A stretch of DNA of 64,000 nucleotides. Origin: Paramoeba atlantica. Taxonomy: Eukaryota; Protista; Discosea. The DNA lies in the NCBI GenBank assembly GCA_977017575.1, contig CDRNVI010000164.1, forward strand, positions 310,001 to 374,000, read 5' to 3'. Made by a program: the position numbers and the translations under genes. The notes beneath the pieces were generated by a model. It was not told the DNA's origin. It did not search any database and saw only the letters and a program-made list of their open reading frames with translations. How positions within the stretch are numbered: the stretch's first letter is position 1; each line of letters opens with the position of its first letter. Positions 18,158 through 23,110 of this stretch are shown one piece after another.

Positions 18158-19471
18158 CCTTGAGAGGTTTTGTTGATGTGATTGACAAATTATTTGTCAA
18201 CTTCAAAGGAGGTGTTCCATTTTCAAAATGTTTTTCTTTCTTTCTTTTTCTTTTTTCTTTTCTTTTTTCTTTTTTCTTTTCTCTTTCTTTTTCCTTTCTT
18301 TTCTCTTTCTCTTTCTTTTCTTTTTTTTCTTTTTCTTTTCTCTTTTTTTTCTTATCTTTTTCTTTTTTCATTTTTTTTTCATTTTTTTCATTTTTTTTTT
18401 CATTTTTTTTTTTTCTTTTTTCTTTTTTCTTTTTTCTTTTTTCTTTTTTTTTTCTTCACTTGTCGGGTTTTAGGCTGTATTCCCTGTATTTTGGGCGTTA
18501 AAAAGCTAGAATGGCTGTGTTTTCCTCATGAGAAAAATAAAATTATCATCTTTGTCTATCCGTCAGAGCAAGTTTTCCGAGGGGAATCTTGAGTAATTTA
18601 TTAGAGATAGGGTTCTAGAATGATCCAGACCAAGATAAGATGGATTGGAGGGTTTTTCGTACAAAAAATCAAATTGTGTGTATTTAGCAATAGCGCTCCA
18701 GACTTCACTTGCCGAAGATTTTGTTGGTGATTGGGGTTTTGGAGTGGCCTGTTGTGTGTGTGTGGATCCAAACCACTTCCACACCATCTTTCTTCACCGT
18801 ATATTGAAATTTAATTCGTAAAACATTTGTTTTGGAACGATATGAGACTGCTAAAGGGGGGACCAAAGACGCAATTTCCCCGCTACGTGATTTCTTGGTC
18901 ACCTTTGCGAAAAAAACACACTCGTCGATTTGGTCCTGTTCCATGAACGCGAGAATCCACCCACTTGTGGTACGAGTTGCAAGAGGAAAAAGAGCACAAA
19001 AAAGGTGTTGGGGAAAATCCCTCAGCAAGATGGATTTTCGTCGACCATCACCAGACCCCGTGGACTTGAAGCTGATCCTTTGCAACATCAATTTCTTGAT
19101 GAAATACACCATCAATTGGTTCAGGTATTCCTCTTTCGATTTTTCTTGGTTTCTTTCTGCAGATTGAATCAACCAAACAGGTGAACAACAAGGATATCTT
19201 GAAACAGGTGGGAGTCACTCAAACAAGACCCGTCGGCGTCTTTGGAATTGTCGGACCCCAATGTATCGAGAAAATCGAAGATTTTGTGAAGCCATATTTC
19301 CGGTAAAAATTCGTTTTTGAGAAAAGAGAAAACGGAAAAAGAAAAAAAAAGAAACAAAAAAAGAAATAAAAAAAATTCAGAGAAAAAGATGAGGGGTCAG
19401 CAAATCAATGTCCAGTGGACATTGACCAAAAAGAGGGTCTTTTTTTTCATTTTTCATTTTTCGTTTTTGCA

Positions 19472-22400
19472 ATGGCTCGATCGAACAAATATGTCACTCC
19501 TCGACCATGTCCTCATATTTGTCAAAAGCATTTCAAGAAGTCTAAGAACCGTTTTGGTGCTTCAGAAACATTGGTTGATTGTCCAACTTTTTCTTCCCGC
19601 TCTGCTTTCCTCTACCATGTTCGAAAAACCAAACATCCAAATTGTCCTCCAACTTGTACATCTTGTAATCCACACAAGAAAAGTGAAGAAGAACCAGACG
19701 CAAAGAGAAGAAAACTCACAAACCAAAATGGTAAAAAAGAAAATATTTTCATTTCAATTCAATAATAATAATTTAATCATGTTCGAGAAAGTTGTAATAA
19801 TTGATTCCAGGGATCTCCGAAATGGATGTTGGTTCAGTAAGTGATATCCCTGAAATGGAGATTGGTTCAGTGAGTGAAGGCGATGATGACGAAATCGAAA
19901 TTGAGACTCTTTCAGACAGCGACGACGATTCTGACGACAGTGAAGATCTCCCAAGCCTCCCCAGCCAAGAGGAGAGAAACTCTTTGCATATGTGCCGACA
20001 CACCAACAACGAAAAGTTTTGTTTCAGCGATGGGGCACTCCGTAATTTCTCGAGTAAATCTGCTCTGATTGTGCATGAACGCAGACACAAGGAACAATGT
20101 GATCTGCCCTGTTGTTATTGTGCTGAGAAAAAGGAAGCTCCAAAGATTCAGGAAGCGAAATATACCAAGTTGACAAAAATAATGACGGCGATCTCTTCTC
20201 TTCCTGGGATTGACTTTGACAACAAAGAGGATTTGGTTGAGTTTCTTCTTTCTTGTTTGACTACTGACACTTTACTTTTTTTGCTCAAAAAGGTGATTGT
20301 TGGAAATGGGGAACTCCATCAGAAGATGACAAGTTTCTTCAATCTTCCTGTGAGGGTACAACAGATGTCTGCGCAAGACAAATATAAAAACCAGGAAGAA
20401 AAGCGAGAGCTCTTGACAAAGATGAATATTCGATTGCATCTCGGGGAAGAAAAGCAAGATGAAATGAATCGGTACATCAACACTGGATTAACAGGGTGCC
20501 AATTACGAGTACGGAAAGAGAAGAAAATATCTGCGATTCCCATGAAACTCTCTCCTGGAAAAAATGGCTATGTTGTGCCTCTCAGAGCGTGTGTTGCAGC
20601 AATGATCCCAAAAAGTAAATGGCCACAGTATGATGCTGAGAATCCAGATGGAATCGTGCTGACCGTCAGCACTGATGGAGGTTCAATGGATAAGAGGAAT
20701 GGAGCTGTAATTTCGAAGATTCAGCGACGAGATGACGACTGGGCAAGGGGAAACCGTTACAAAATGCCATCCCTGAGTGCAACCCACGCAATGCTCTACA
20801 TTAAAGAGACATACGAGAATTTGAAAGTCGAACTTGCTCCTCTTTATACTGCAATTGGAAAAGGGACTTTGAAGTGCTCTGATGGGAAAACACGAAAACT
20901 TTTGGTTGGAGAATCGAACGATATGAAGATGACACTGCTGTTGACAGGAAGGGGACAACTTTTTCGTCGGACTTCTGAACTTCTCTGTACTCGATGTCCT
21001 GCTCGAAGAAGATACTGGACTTCAACTCCAGAGAGGCATCACTTTGATGGTTCACTCAGCCCAGAAGACTGGAAGGTGTTTGAGAGTTTTGAGAAAGAAG
21101 ATGATCCTGAGAGTGAAAACATCTCCAAGTCAAATACAAGGTCATATGGCTGGACCACCCTTGAGGAACTCCGTGAAATCGCGAAAAGGATTGAAGAACT
21201 CCAAGAAGATGTGAGAAATTCAGTTGAAGGAGCGGCTCAGGAACTTGACGAACTGAGAAAGACTTCTGGGGTTGAACACATGCCAATTACGGCGGTCCCG
21301 ATTTATCTCCATTTTACTGAGCTTCTTCATGCAACTGAAGGAGTTACGAAAAGAGTGGTCAAGTTGATGGTCTTGGATGTCCCAAACAAGACTATTCACG
21401 AAACACGTGTCAAATACGTTTTCAAGAAATACATCGGTGTTGAATTCAAGGAAACAAAAAACGAGCAACTCTGGCAAAGATTGGACAAAGACCGTTTGAA
21501 TCGCGTTCAGTGGCTAAAAATGCTGCAAGGTTTCTTCGATGAATCAGGTTTTTTTTAATTGGTCCCTATTTTTGTTTCACGTTCCCTCTCACTTTTCTCT
21601 TGCCACAGACGCTCAAAACCCAGAGGATGTTGGTGTTATTGAGGTCTTGCTTGGGTTTTCTCCTGAAGAGTATGGAATTCCACCGAACCTCTGGGCTGCC
21701 AGAGTAGTGTTCATGACTTTGACCTATGACATTCTGTATTTAGCTTCAAAAAGAAGACGCCTTACGCCTGAAGAGTGTAATGAAGTTCGGATCTTGACCT
21801 TGCGTTGGGGTCGTGCGTTTCTTCAATCTGGTTTTAGTATTGACTTGTGGACTTCGAAGTTTCATGAATTTCATGAACATCTTTATTGGGACCTTTTAAA
21901 GTTTTCTTTTCATTCTTTCCCTTTTCTCTTTCCCTTTTCTCTTTCCCTTTTCCCTTTCCCTTTCCCTTTCCCTTTCCCTTTCCCTTTCCCCTTCCCTTCC
22001 TTGCCCCTTCTTGCTCTGATTCAAAATTTCTTTCTTCAAGGTATTCCCTTTACCAACGTTCCTCCATGCCTGTGGAGTCAGCCATTGCGATTTCGAAAGC
22101 TGATGCTCGGCGGAATCATGTTTTTACACGTGCCCGACCCGGAGAGAGCCGCTTTGTTAATGGAATGCGAAAATTGATGGGGATGTCTTGGCTGCGCAGA
22201 GAAGTTGACTCTCAGATTGCTGAAGAAGAACTTCCCTTCCTTTCAGAAGATCCGACAAAATATCGCTGTTGGCGAGTTCTCTCAGAAGGGGATGACCGAT
22301 TTGAATTGCCCTTTGCGCTTGACAAGAAAAGCCAGAGCCTCATTTTGAAATTGCAATCCACTTTTGCTCTGCCGAAAGTACATGAATTAAATGTTATTCA

Positions 22401-22665
22401 TGCCCCTCCTGTGGAGTCCCCCTTTGAGGTGTTGCGAAAACGAGTACAACACAAAGAAGCGACCTACCAGGGCTGCACCAAAGATATTTTATTCGGTTTG
22501 TTGACGGGAAAAAACATCAAATTTCGTCGGGGTGATAATAAGTCTGTCTTGGTCGAAGCTCTTTTAAAGGACGATTTTCCTGAGTTCTTTGAAAGACCCA
22601 CCCCTCTCTCTTCCCCTGAGGTCTTTGACCAATTCTCCAACCTCGATTTTTCTCTCCCTGGTTGA
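19472..22665 (+). CDS. DDE transposase with RAG1/Transib/Chapaev-type core (4 exons, apparently intact)
   Basis: Introns 19731-19810, 21548-21608 and 21901-22040 are all GT-AG and restore frame. Motifs in order: VSTDGG (D, 20674), NDMKM...LLCTRCP (D at 20920 plus CxxC), ELLHATEGVTKRVVK, TSKFHEFHEHL (His pair) and SSMPVES (E, 22075). Confidence 0.8.
21950..21990 (+). repeat. (TTTCCC)n microsatellite in the third transposase intron
   Basis: About 7 tandem hexamers are visible. Confidence 0.85.
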
Positions 22666-23110
22666 AAGTTGGTGTTTTTGTGATGCTTTTTGCCTGCATT
22701 TTTTTTGAATGAATTCTATTTTGTTTTAAGAATCCTGTACTTTTTTTATTTTTCAAGAATCGCGTTTTTTTCAGTTTTCAGAGATGTCTGTCAGATGAGA
22801 GCGTTAAAAAGCTACGCTGTCATTCGGATGACCACGACAAGTGTTTTTCTTTTTCTTTCTTTTTTTTTTCTTTTTTTTTCTTTTTTTTTTTCTTTTTTTT
22901 CTTTTTTTTTTTTTTAATTTTTTAATTTTTCTTTTTTCTCTCTTTCTTTTTTGGACTTCATTTTGATTTCTTTCTTTTCATTTTTCTTTTTTCTTTTTTG
23001 AAATTGACTTCCATTTTCCCCTCTTTAGGAAAAGGTTTGGTGGACAAATTGGTCTTGGAGTTCAAAAAATGGGTTGCTGAAAAGAAATAAAATAACAAAA
23101 GAAAAGAATA

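Follow-up and report, generated by a model that had tools for sequence, protein, structure and literature searches.

What kind of mobile element lies at positions 18457–22843 of a 64,000-nucleotide stretch of Paramoeba atlantica DNA (contig CDRNVI010000164.1, positions 310,001 to 374,000 of the forward strand; hereafter the window), and does it bear on the origin of the RAG1 recombinase? An earlier note on this DNA had described an apparently intact RAG1/Transib/Chapaev-like transposon with CAC termini at this place. Our analysis indicates that the locus is very probably an autonomous-type cut-and-paste DNA transposon of the CMCT clade, belonging to a rare family that carries no name. Predicted fold, motif series and conserved termini agree, and the earlier description was right at the supergroup level. 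Its further suggestion of a lineage specially relevant to RAG1 origins is not supported: no profile similarity to RAG1 or Transib was detected, the features concerned are clade-wide, and the neighbours found lean towards Plavaka, Transposase_21 and DUF4218 more than towards RAG1. Nor does the family provide grounds for a particular connection with the origin of V(D)J recombination.

The CMCT clade (EnSpm/CACTA, Mirage, Chapaev and Transib; Kojima 2025) is listed as comprising EnSpm/CACTA, Mirage, Chapaev, Transib, Plavaka, ESTA, Lanisha and RAG1. In those passages of the published accounts that describe it, a C(2)C pair, an LH motif, an H(4)H pair and CAC termini are features of the whole clade (PMC12730594, PMC4079192), which is further characterised by a target-site duplication (TSD) of 2–5 bp (PMC12730594). 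The passage on Chapaev, which cites Yuan & Wessler (2011), attributes to that superfamily all three of these motifs, CAC/GTG termini and a TSD of 3–4 bp (PMC4079192). For Transib, a 5-bp TSD, a preference for GC-rich targets and a terminal inverted repeat (TIR) in which a spacer separates a CACAATG heptamer from an A-rich nonamer have been reported (PMC1131882).

Conserved termini in the element and its relatives

The whole transposon measures 4,387 bp and carries the 9-bp sequence CACTTGTCG at both ends. As had been claimed, these nine bases form an inverted repeat; they have exactly two matches in the window, at 18457–18465 (+) and 22835–22843 (−). The chance expectation was a mean of 0.26 matches, two being reached in 2 of 100 shuffles, and the repeat of this copy, taken alone, is weak evidence for a TIR. 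We regard the TIR as real because the terminus CACTTRTCGGG also bounds the related elements L001, L004, L006, L009 and L010, whose proteins are only 28–47% identical. Conservation of the inverted repeat at the ends of other copies had been proposed in advance as a test of the prediction, and it was found in these five sequences. The 5′ TIR (18457–18469, +; CACTTGTCGGGTT) matches the family terminus, its first nine bases being perfect against the 3′ end. The 3′ TIR (22831–22843, −), which reads inward as CACTTGTCGTGGT, differs from the family consensus at positions 10 and 12; in an ungapped comparison of the two ends, 11 of the first 13 bases are identical.

In L001, a Logan contig, the transposase is 47% identical to that of the window over the aligned core, and the 4,224-bp element is delimited by a perfect 13-bp TIR, CACTTATCGGGTT. 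The 4,631-bp element of the ENA contig L010 also has a perfect 13-bp TIR, CACTTATCGGGGT. Two copies in L004 are 99.8–99.9% identical to L010 and to each other. These three copies come from a sample other than that of the window, and their divergence from their differing flanks begins exactly at CAC. The L010/L004 element multiplied recently. Termini of the form CAC…GTG are present in the window element, L001 and L010, and the single ends of L004, L005, L006 and L009 agree with them; the 3′ ends of L006 and L005 match the family terminus. The window element itself is flanked on both sides by one pyrimidine tract, which stops at 18456 and restarts at 22844 (right part, 22844–22950, +), consistent with the previous description of an insertion that interrupts a single T-rich tract of the host.

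Two of the related contigs have a structure of their own. L004, a 16.4-kb ENA contig named circular, contains within positions 1–12540 two 99.9%-identical copies, each without the last 7 bp at its 3′ end, which alternate with a minus-strand gene (about 4601–6056) and have the look of a tandem array; the 26 bp that precede copy 1 are repeated at 6002–6027. Either an immobilised copy underwent segmental duplication or the array is an artefact of assembly. On the 523-kb contig L009, a truncated 5′ relic (6884–7593), 71% identical to L010, retains the terminus and a gene like the second gene described below (ORF2), adjoins a T-rich tract as the window element does, and lies near a piggyBac-type DDE_Tnp_1_7 gene (5730–6479, −).

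The transposase gene and its motif series

An exhaustive search of GT/AG combinations near the exon borders proposed earlier yielded a transposase gene of 970 amino acids in four exons, with GT-AG introns and no stop codon, in agreement with the four-exon reading frame of about 970 residues without a frameshift announced before. The sole alternative splice model uses an acceptor 15 nt downstream and encodes 965 amino acids. Exon 1 (19472–19730, +) encodes residues 1–86 plus 1 nt and supplies a Cys/His-rich N-terminus resembling those of the homologues P0003, P0008 and P0014. Exon 2 (19811–21547, +) contains an acidic stretch, a C2H2-like finger, a helical N-terminal region and the RNase H-like core, with D375 (20674–20676), D457 (20920–20922), C479 (20986–20988) and C482 (20995–20997), followed by HHFDG and the ELLH593 motif. 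Exon 3 (21609–21900, +) carries FHEFHEH, in which H751 (21863–21865) and H756 (21878–21880) make up H(4)H. Exon 4 (22041–22665, +) contains E775 (22075–22077) within MPVES, assigned as the catalytic glutamate, an FxRxRxGE block and a degenerate SAP-like tail, and ends at the stop codon 22663–22665. The SAP domain is significant in the relatives L001 and L005 (E 5e-9 and 9e-11); the tail of the window protein is SAP-like without a score.

Each intron position is bridged by homologues that do not have the intron in question: that of intron 1 by P0003 and P0028, that of intron 2 by P0010 and the MMETSP transcript P0019, and that of intron 3 by P0019 and L006. An RNA-type sequencing run contains 38% of the sampled words of the element.

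All motifs listed in the earlier note are present and in the order given there: STDGG (373), NDMKM (456), CTRC (479), ELLHATEG (590), FHEFHEHL (750) and MPVES (772). They are well conserved in the family alignment, with D375 in 14/16 sequences, D457 in 21/22, C479 in 23/25, C482 in 24/25 and H593 in 21/21, the ELLH of residues 590–593 appearing as I/L-H in all 21. No C-terminal sequence lacks H751, H756 or E775. Since Phe takes the place of the middle His of FHEFHEH in L005, the constraint falls on the H(4)H pair. The window protein has 22 residues from D457 to C479 and 19 from H756 to E775; the corresponding distances in RAG1 are 19 (D708 to C727) and 20 (H942 to E962), so that the predicted spacings are close to those of RAG1.

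Three of the features that define the clade were found: a DDE triad on an RNase H-like core (E775 being placed by sequence only), C479-x2-C482 together with H751-x4-H756, and 5′-CA…TG-3′ termini. The motifs and CAC/GTG termini that the cited passage gives for Chapaev are present as well.

Predicted fold of the transposase

A model of residues 299–772 was obtained with AlphaFold from an alignment of 30 sequences (pLDDT 78, pTM 0.61). D375 falls within the first strand of the modelled core and D457 right after the fourth, the usual layout of RNase H-like enzymes. When the model was compared with the PDB using Foldseek, the top 48 matches were all RAG1, BbRAGL or HzTransib (best E 7e-6), RNase HI coming next at E 0.07. 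With VIA-align, RAG1 reached Z 13.7 over 275 residues (model 87–412 on RAG1 460–852), BbRAGL Z 11.0 and HzTransib Z 7.4–8.3, versus 5.7 for retroviral integrase, 5.0 for the P element and 4.3 for Hermes. Among Swiss-Prot models, the best eight Foldseek matches were the RAG1 proteins of eight vertebrates, the next having E >0.04.

The model places a RAG1-like fold in residues ~280–660. Because the PDB contains no CMC transposase, these matches speak for membership of the clade and not for closeness to RAG1. Searching an atlas of predicted structures by shape gave RAG1 at TM 0.53–0.56 and the CACTA Transposase_21 at TM 0.50–0.51; where CMC models exist, the predicted structure matches RAG1 and CMC about evenly. 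Better matches than RAG1 were uncharacterised cnidarian, rotifer and Rhizophagus-like proteins in AlphaFold DB clusters (E 1e-12 to 1e-8).

A rare family with no detected link to the named ones

Pfam searches returned nothing for the exons, for 19 family members (E≤10) or for the C-terminal parts (E≤5). Specifically, the Pfam RAG1 domains were unmatched at E≤10, and Transposase_21 (PF02992) and DUF4218 were unmatched at E≤10 for the 19 members and at E≤5 for the C-terminal parts. The family profiles A2 and A5, run with HMMER against all PDB chains, including those of RAG1, BbRAGL and HzTransib, had no match at E≤10. A phmmer search of PDB sequences yielded marginal C2H2-finger matches to the N-terminus, with E of at least 0.46, plus chance matches.

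When 1.84 billion cluster representatives were searched with a family profile, only 24 relatives were recovered. None of these is named, has a Pfam domain or comes from an annotated animal family, and none connects the family to a named one. A further search, indexed by words and run with a 19-sequence profile, found no additional relatives, and of the 467 pattern matches in a metagenome scan with profile A1 none was confirmed. The family is rare and occurs in protist-like genomic, metagenomic and transcriptome data.

Protein language-model neighbours were used as leads, not as tests. For the core these were Plavaka (0.89), Transposase_21 (0.87) and RAG1 (0.83); for the C-terminal half, DUF4218 (0.91), DUF6830 and Plavaka, with RAG1 absent. 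The nearest neighbours by language model and structure are unnamed proteins of ~600–700 amino acids from Cnidaria, Porifera, rotifers and Mucoromycota, some of them with C2H2 fingers.

A conserved second gene

Between the 5′ end and the transposase gene lies a second gene that the earlier note had overlooked. This gene, ORF2 (18705–19172, −), is a 155-codon open frame divergent from the transposase gene and contains a conserved domain of ~125 amino acids; its start codon is uncertain and may be the ATG found within the frame at codon 21 or lie in an upstream exon joined by splicing. Five elements (window, L001, L004, L005 and L006) have kept ORF2. The window protein matches opposite-strand ORFs of L001, L004 and L005 (blastp E 1e-5 to 7e-15), and the L006 ORF is tied to the set through L001 and L004; within the set, blastp matches have E 1e-5 to 1e-24 (alignment A4). 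In L006 the ORF2-type gene stands downstream of the transposase instead. The domain also occurs in four database proteins, P0035–P0038. No Pfam or PDB relative of ORF2 was found, and a SPRY/Neuralized-like lead is weak. Plus-strand positions 18930–19306 had been considered as extra transposase exons and were rejected, the conserved frame there being on the minus strand.

A third small ORF of ~101–107 amino acids is found in L005 (978–1283, −) and L002 (463–786, +), the two products being 51% identical (E 2e-29). It lies upstream of the transposase gene, in opposite orientations in the two contigs, and is absent from the window element.

Target sites and alternative explanations

Several observations weigh against the assignment to the CMCT clade as an autonomous-type transposon. 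The searches by sequence (HMMER, Pfam, PDB chains) gave no link to any named family. The exact element is known from one copy, the P0001 cluster consisting of one member from one contig. The structural model is limited to exon 2, H(4)H and E775 being placed by sequence pattern, and the introns are predicted from the genomic sequence and homologues, not from transcripts of this organism. Given the two off-consensus positions of its 3′ TIR, the window copy may be immobile.

To these is added the behaviour of the insertion sites. Repeats of 2–5 bp and of 8 bp were sought at the ends of the three complete elements (window, L001 and L010), and no consistent TSD was found. The window flanks are of low complexity, and their repeats are limited to such letters: TT, or the 8-bp TTTTTCTT, whose match was rejected as a TSD and attributed to coincidence in low-complexity sequence. 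The 3-bp flanks are CTT/TTT in the window and CAG/AAG in L001, differing by one base in each, and ATT/AAT in L010; neither L001 nor the young L010 copy has a clean 2–5 bp repeat. In this small sample no intact 5-bp repeat is present (TTCTT/TTTTT in the window, TTCAG/AAGTC in L001 and TTATT/AATTT in L010). The tandem arrangement of L004 was dropped as a source of TSDs, both copies being without their last 7 bp. The flanks of the window element, L009 and L010 are AT-rich.

Could the locus be a host gene pair accompanied by a short inverted repeat that arose by chance? Such a pair would fit the finding of just one copy, both in the window and on record, and a 9-bp repeat that shuffling reproduced in 2 of 100 trials. 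The multi-copy data contradict it, however: the same terminus bounds homologous two-gene units across contigs and samples, near-identical copies stand in different flanks, and a truncated relic exists. The element moreover interrupts a continuous T-rich tract, and we consider a host gene pair extremely improbable. Membership of the Transib superfamily, or a position as pre-metazoan sister of RAG1/RAGL that would be informative on the origin of the V(D)J recombinase, is very unlikely, although RAG1 is the best structural match among all solved and reviewed proteins. With no CMC transposase in the PDB, any CMCT member would find its best solved match in RAG1/Transib, and HzTransib matches less well than RAG1 (Z 8 versus 13.7). 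The match does run past the RNase H core into the DDBD/pre-RNase H regions, some alignments starting near the NBD (RAG1 ~366–403), and the H(4)H-19-E spacing is almost that of RAG1. Yet the family profiles had no HMMER match to RAG1/Transib chains or to Pfam RAG1 domains, and neither similarity to Transib in sequence, nor a TIR resembling a recombination signal sequence, nor a 5-bp TSD in a GC-rich target was found. Only CAC is common to the termini and the CACAATG heptamer, and no conserved nonamer was seen at either end; the flanks are AT-rich, whereas for Transib a preference for GC-rich targets and TSDs of 5 bp are on record (PMC1131882). The neighbours of the C-terminal half are DUF4218, DUF6830 and Plavaka, without RAG1. 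Nor was a partner found like the RAG2 Kelch propeller of RAG1–RAG2-like transposons of the ProtoRAG type, the only second gene, ORF2, being far too small to encode one.

More speaks for the view that the element simply belongs to the described Chapaev superfamily (CMC) and came to the protist by vertical descent or horizontal transfer, a view that we judge rather unlikely. All three motifs, C(2)C, LH and H(4)H, occur here with the CAC/GTG termini that the cited passage attributes to Chapaev (PMC4079192), but the same motifs are common to the whole CMCT clade (PMC12730594), and the comparison was made with the description of Chapaev. The 3-bp flanks that differ by one base in the window and L001 would also fit a Chapaev element, as do the unnamed cnidarian, poriferan, rotifer and mucoromycotan neighbours, some with C2H2 fingers; against this, the 1.84 billion representatives contained only 24 relatives, none of them from an annotated animal family. 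We know of no report of an ORF2-like second gene in Chapaev. We therefore favour a CMCT-clade transposon of its own family and place this family, tentatively and on weak evidence, nearer the CMC side than Transib/RAG1. A bolder version, in which it would be an undescribed protist CMCT lineage branching near the split of CMC from Transib/RAG1, with a RAG1-like N-terminal DNA-binding architecture (from about RAG1 390) and the accessory ORF2, is in our estimate unlikely.

Proposed mechanism and significance

From its N-terminus onwards, the transposase would consist of Cys/His fingers, a helical region that binds DNA, the RNase H-like DDE core, a C2-H2 zinc module and the SAP-like tail. By analogy with RAG1 and HzTransib, a transposase dimer would bind the CACTTRTCGGG ends, and the D375/D457/E775 triad would nick at the CAC boundary. 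The freed 3′-OH would then attack the opposite strand and leave a hairpin on the flank, after which the excised element would integrate through a short staggered cut. The same analogy suggests that C479/C482 and H751/H756 hold a structural zinc; the zinc ligands of RAG1 are C727, C730, H937 and H942. ORF2 could, speculatively, be an accessory factor in the manner of En/Spm TnpA. The window copy has two open genes; being the only copy of its kind on record, with a 3′ TIR slightly off the consensus, it is no more than a candidate for the activity that the earlier note had thought possible.

Most of the known CMCT diversity is that of animals, plants and fungi, and to our knowledge the only solved structures in the clade are those of RAG1, RAGL and one insect Transib. 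The present family widens the sampled range with a RAG1 fold that has no detectable RAG1 sequence similarity. It is a distinct, rare two-gene family with strongly conserved 11-bp termini and near-identical young copies, and its conserved partner gene is new here. Being compact (4.2–4.6 kb), the two-gene element may help to decide which features of RAG1, among the zinc module, the hairpin chemistry and end recognition, are ancestral to the clade. If the family did branch near the split of CMC from Transib/RAG1, it would provide a non-animal outgroup for reconstructing how RAG1-type recombinases were assembled, and the young, 99.9%-identical L010-type copies would offer a possibly active, testable element.

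Subterminal repeats and surroundings of the element

Two exact copies of the 14-bp repeat GCGTTAAAAAGCTA lie near the ends of the window element, at 18495–18508 (+), 39 nt from the 5′ end, and at 22801–22814 (+), 29 nt from the 3′ end. They stand in direct, not inverted, orientation and are possible protein-binding sites. L001 and L010 have subterminal inverted motifs of their own, ~30–40 nt from each end.

The earlier note had placed the transposon inside a P element. The nesting itself stands: a pair of 324-bp inverted repeats, 97.2% identical (17836–18157 and 27124–27447), encloses ~9.6 kb that include the element. The P identity of this outer unit is tentative, its ORF 25532–26023 (−) having a sub-threshold match to the P-element helix-turn-helix domain PF12017 (E 0.07). 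Close to the inner edge of each arm of the 324-bp repeat there are tracts of pyrimidines and of purines. In the neighbourhood, a host-type ORF (16528–18021, −) carries a Laminin_G_3 (concanavalin-like) domain according to the precomputed Pfam matches for the contig.

Comparison with known systems

The likeness to RAG1, BbRAGL and HzTransib lies in the architecture. Helical DNA-binding regions precede an RNase H-like DDE core, and the model aligns with RAG1 460–852 at Z 13.7; C(2)C comes after the second D and H(4)H ~20 residues before E, and the termini start with CAC. Sequence similarity to RAG1 and Transib is, in contrast, not detectable with HMMER. The spacings between the catalytic residues differ from those of RAG1 (D-D 82 here versus 108; D-E 318 versus 254), the termini begin with CACTTRT instead of CACAATG or CACAGTG and have no nonamer, and the window protein has N-terminal Cys/His fingers and a C-terminal SAP-type tail, unlike RAG1 and Transib. 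Insertion sites are AT-rich and showed no 5-bp TSD, unlike those reported for Transib, and the partner gene encodes a domain of ~125 amino acids where the RAG1–RAG2 system has the RAG2 propeller.

Chapaev, compared by its description only, resembles the element in its CAC…GTG termini, its C(2)C, LH and H(4)H motifs, its size of a few kilobases and its spliced transposase gene. It differs in that the present element has a second conserved gene and comes from a protist-type source, not from an animal. EnSpm/CACTA elements differ in having termini in CACTA, not CACTT; no Pfam match to them was found here even at E 10, and ORF2 is without similarity to anything named. With EnSpm/CACTA and Plavaka (PF02992, PF13960 DUF4218, PF18759) the element nevertheless shares the motif series of the clade and a predicted structure matching at TM ~0.50, and its two-gene organisation recalls the TnpA/TnpD pair of En/Spm.

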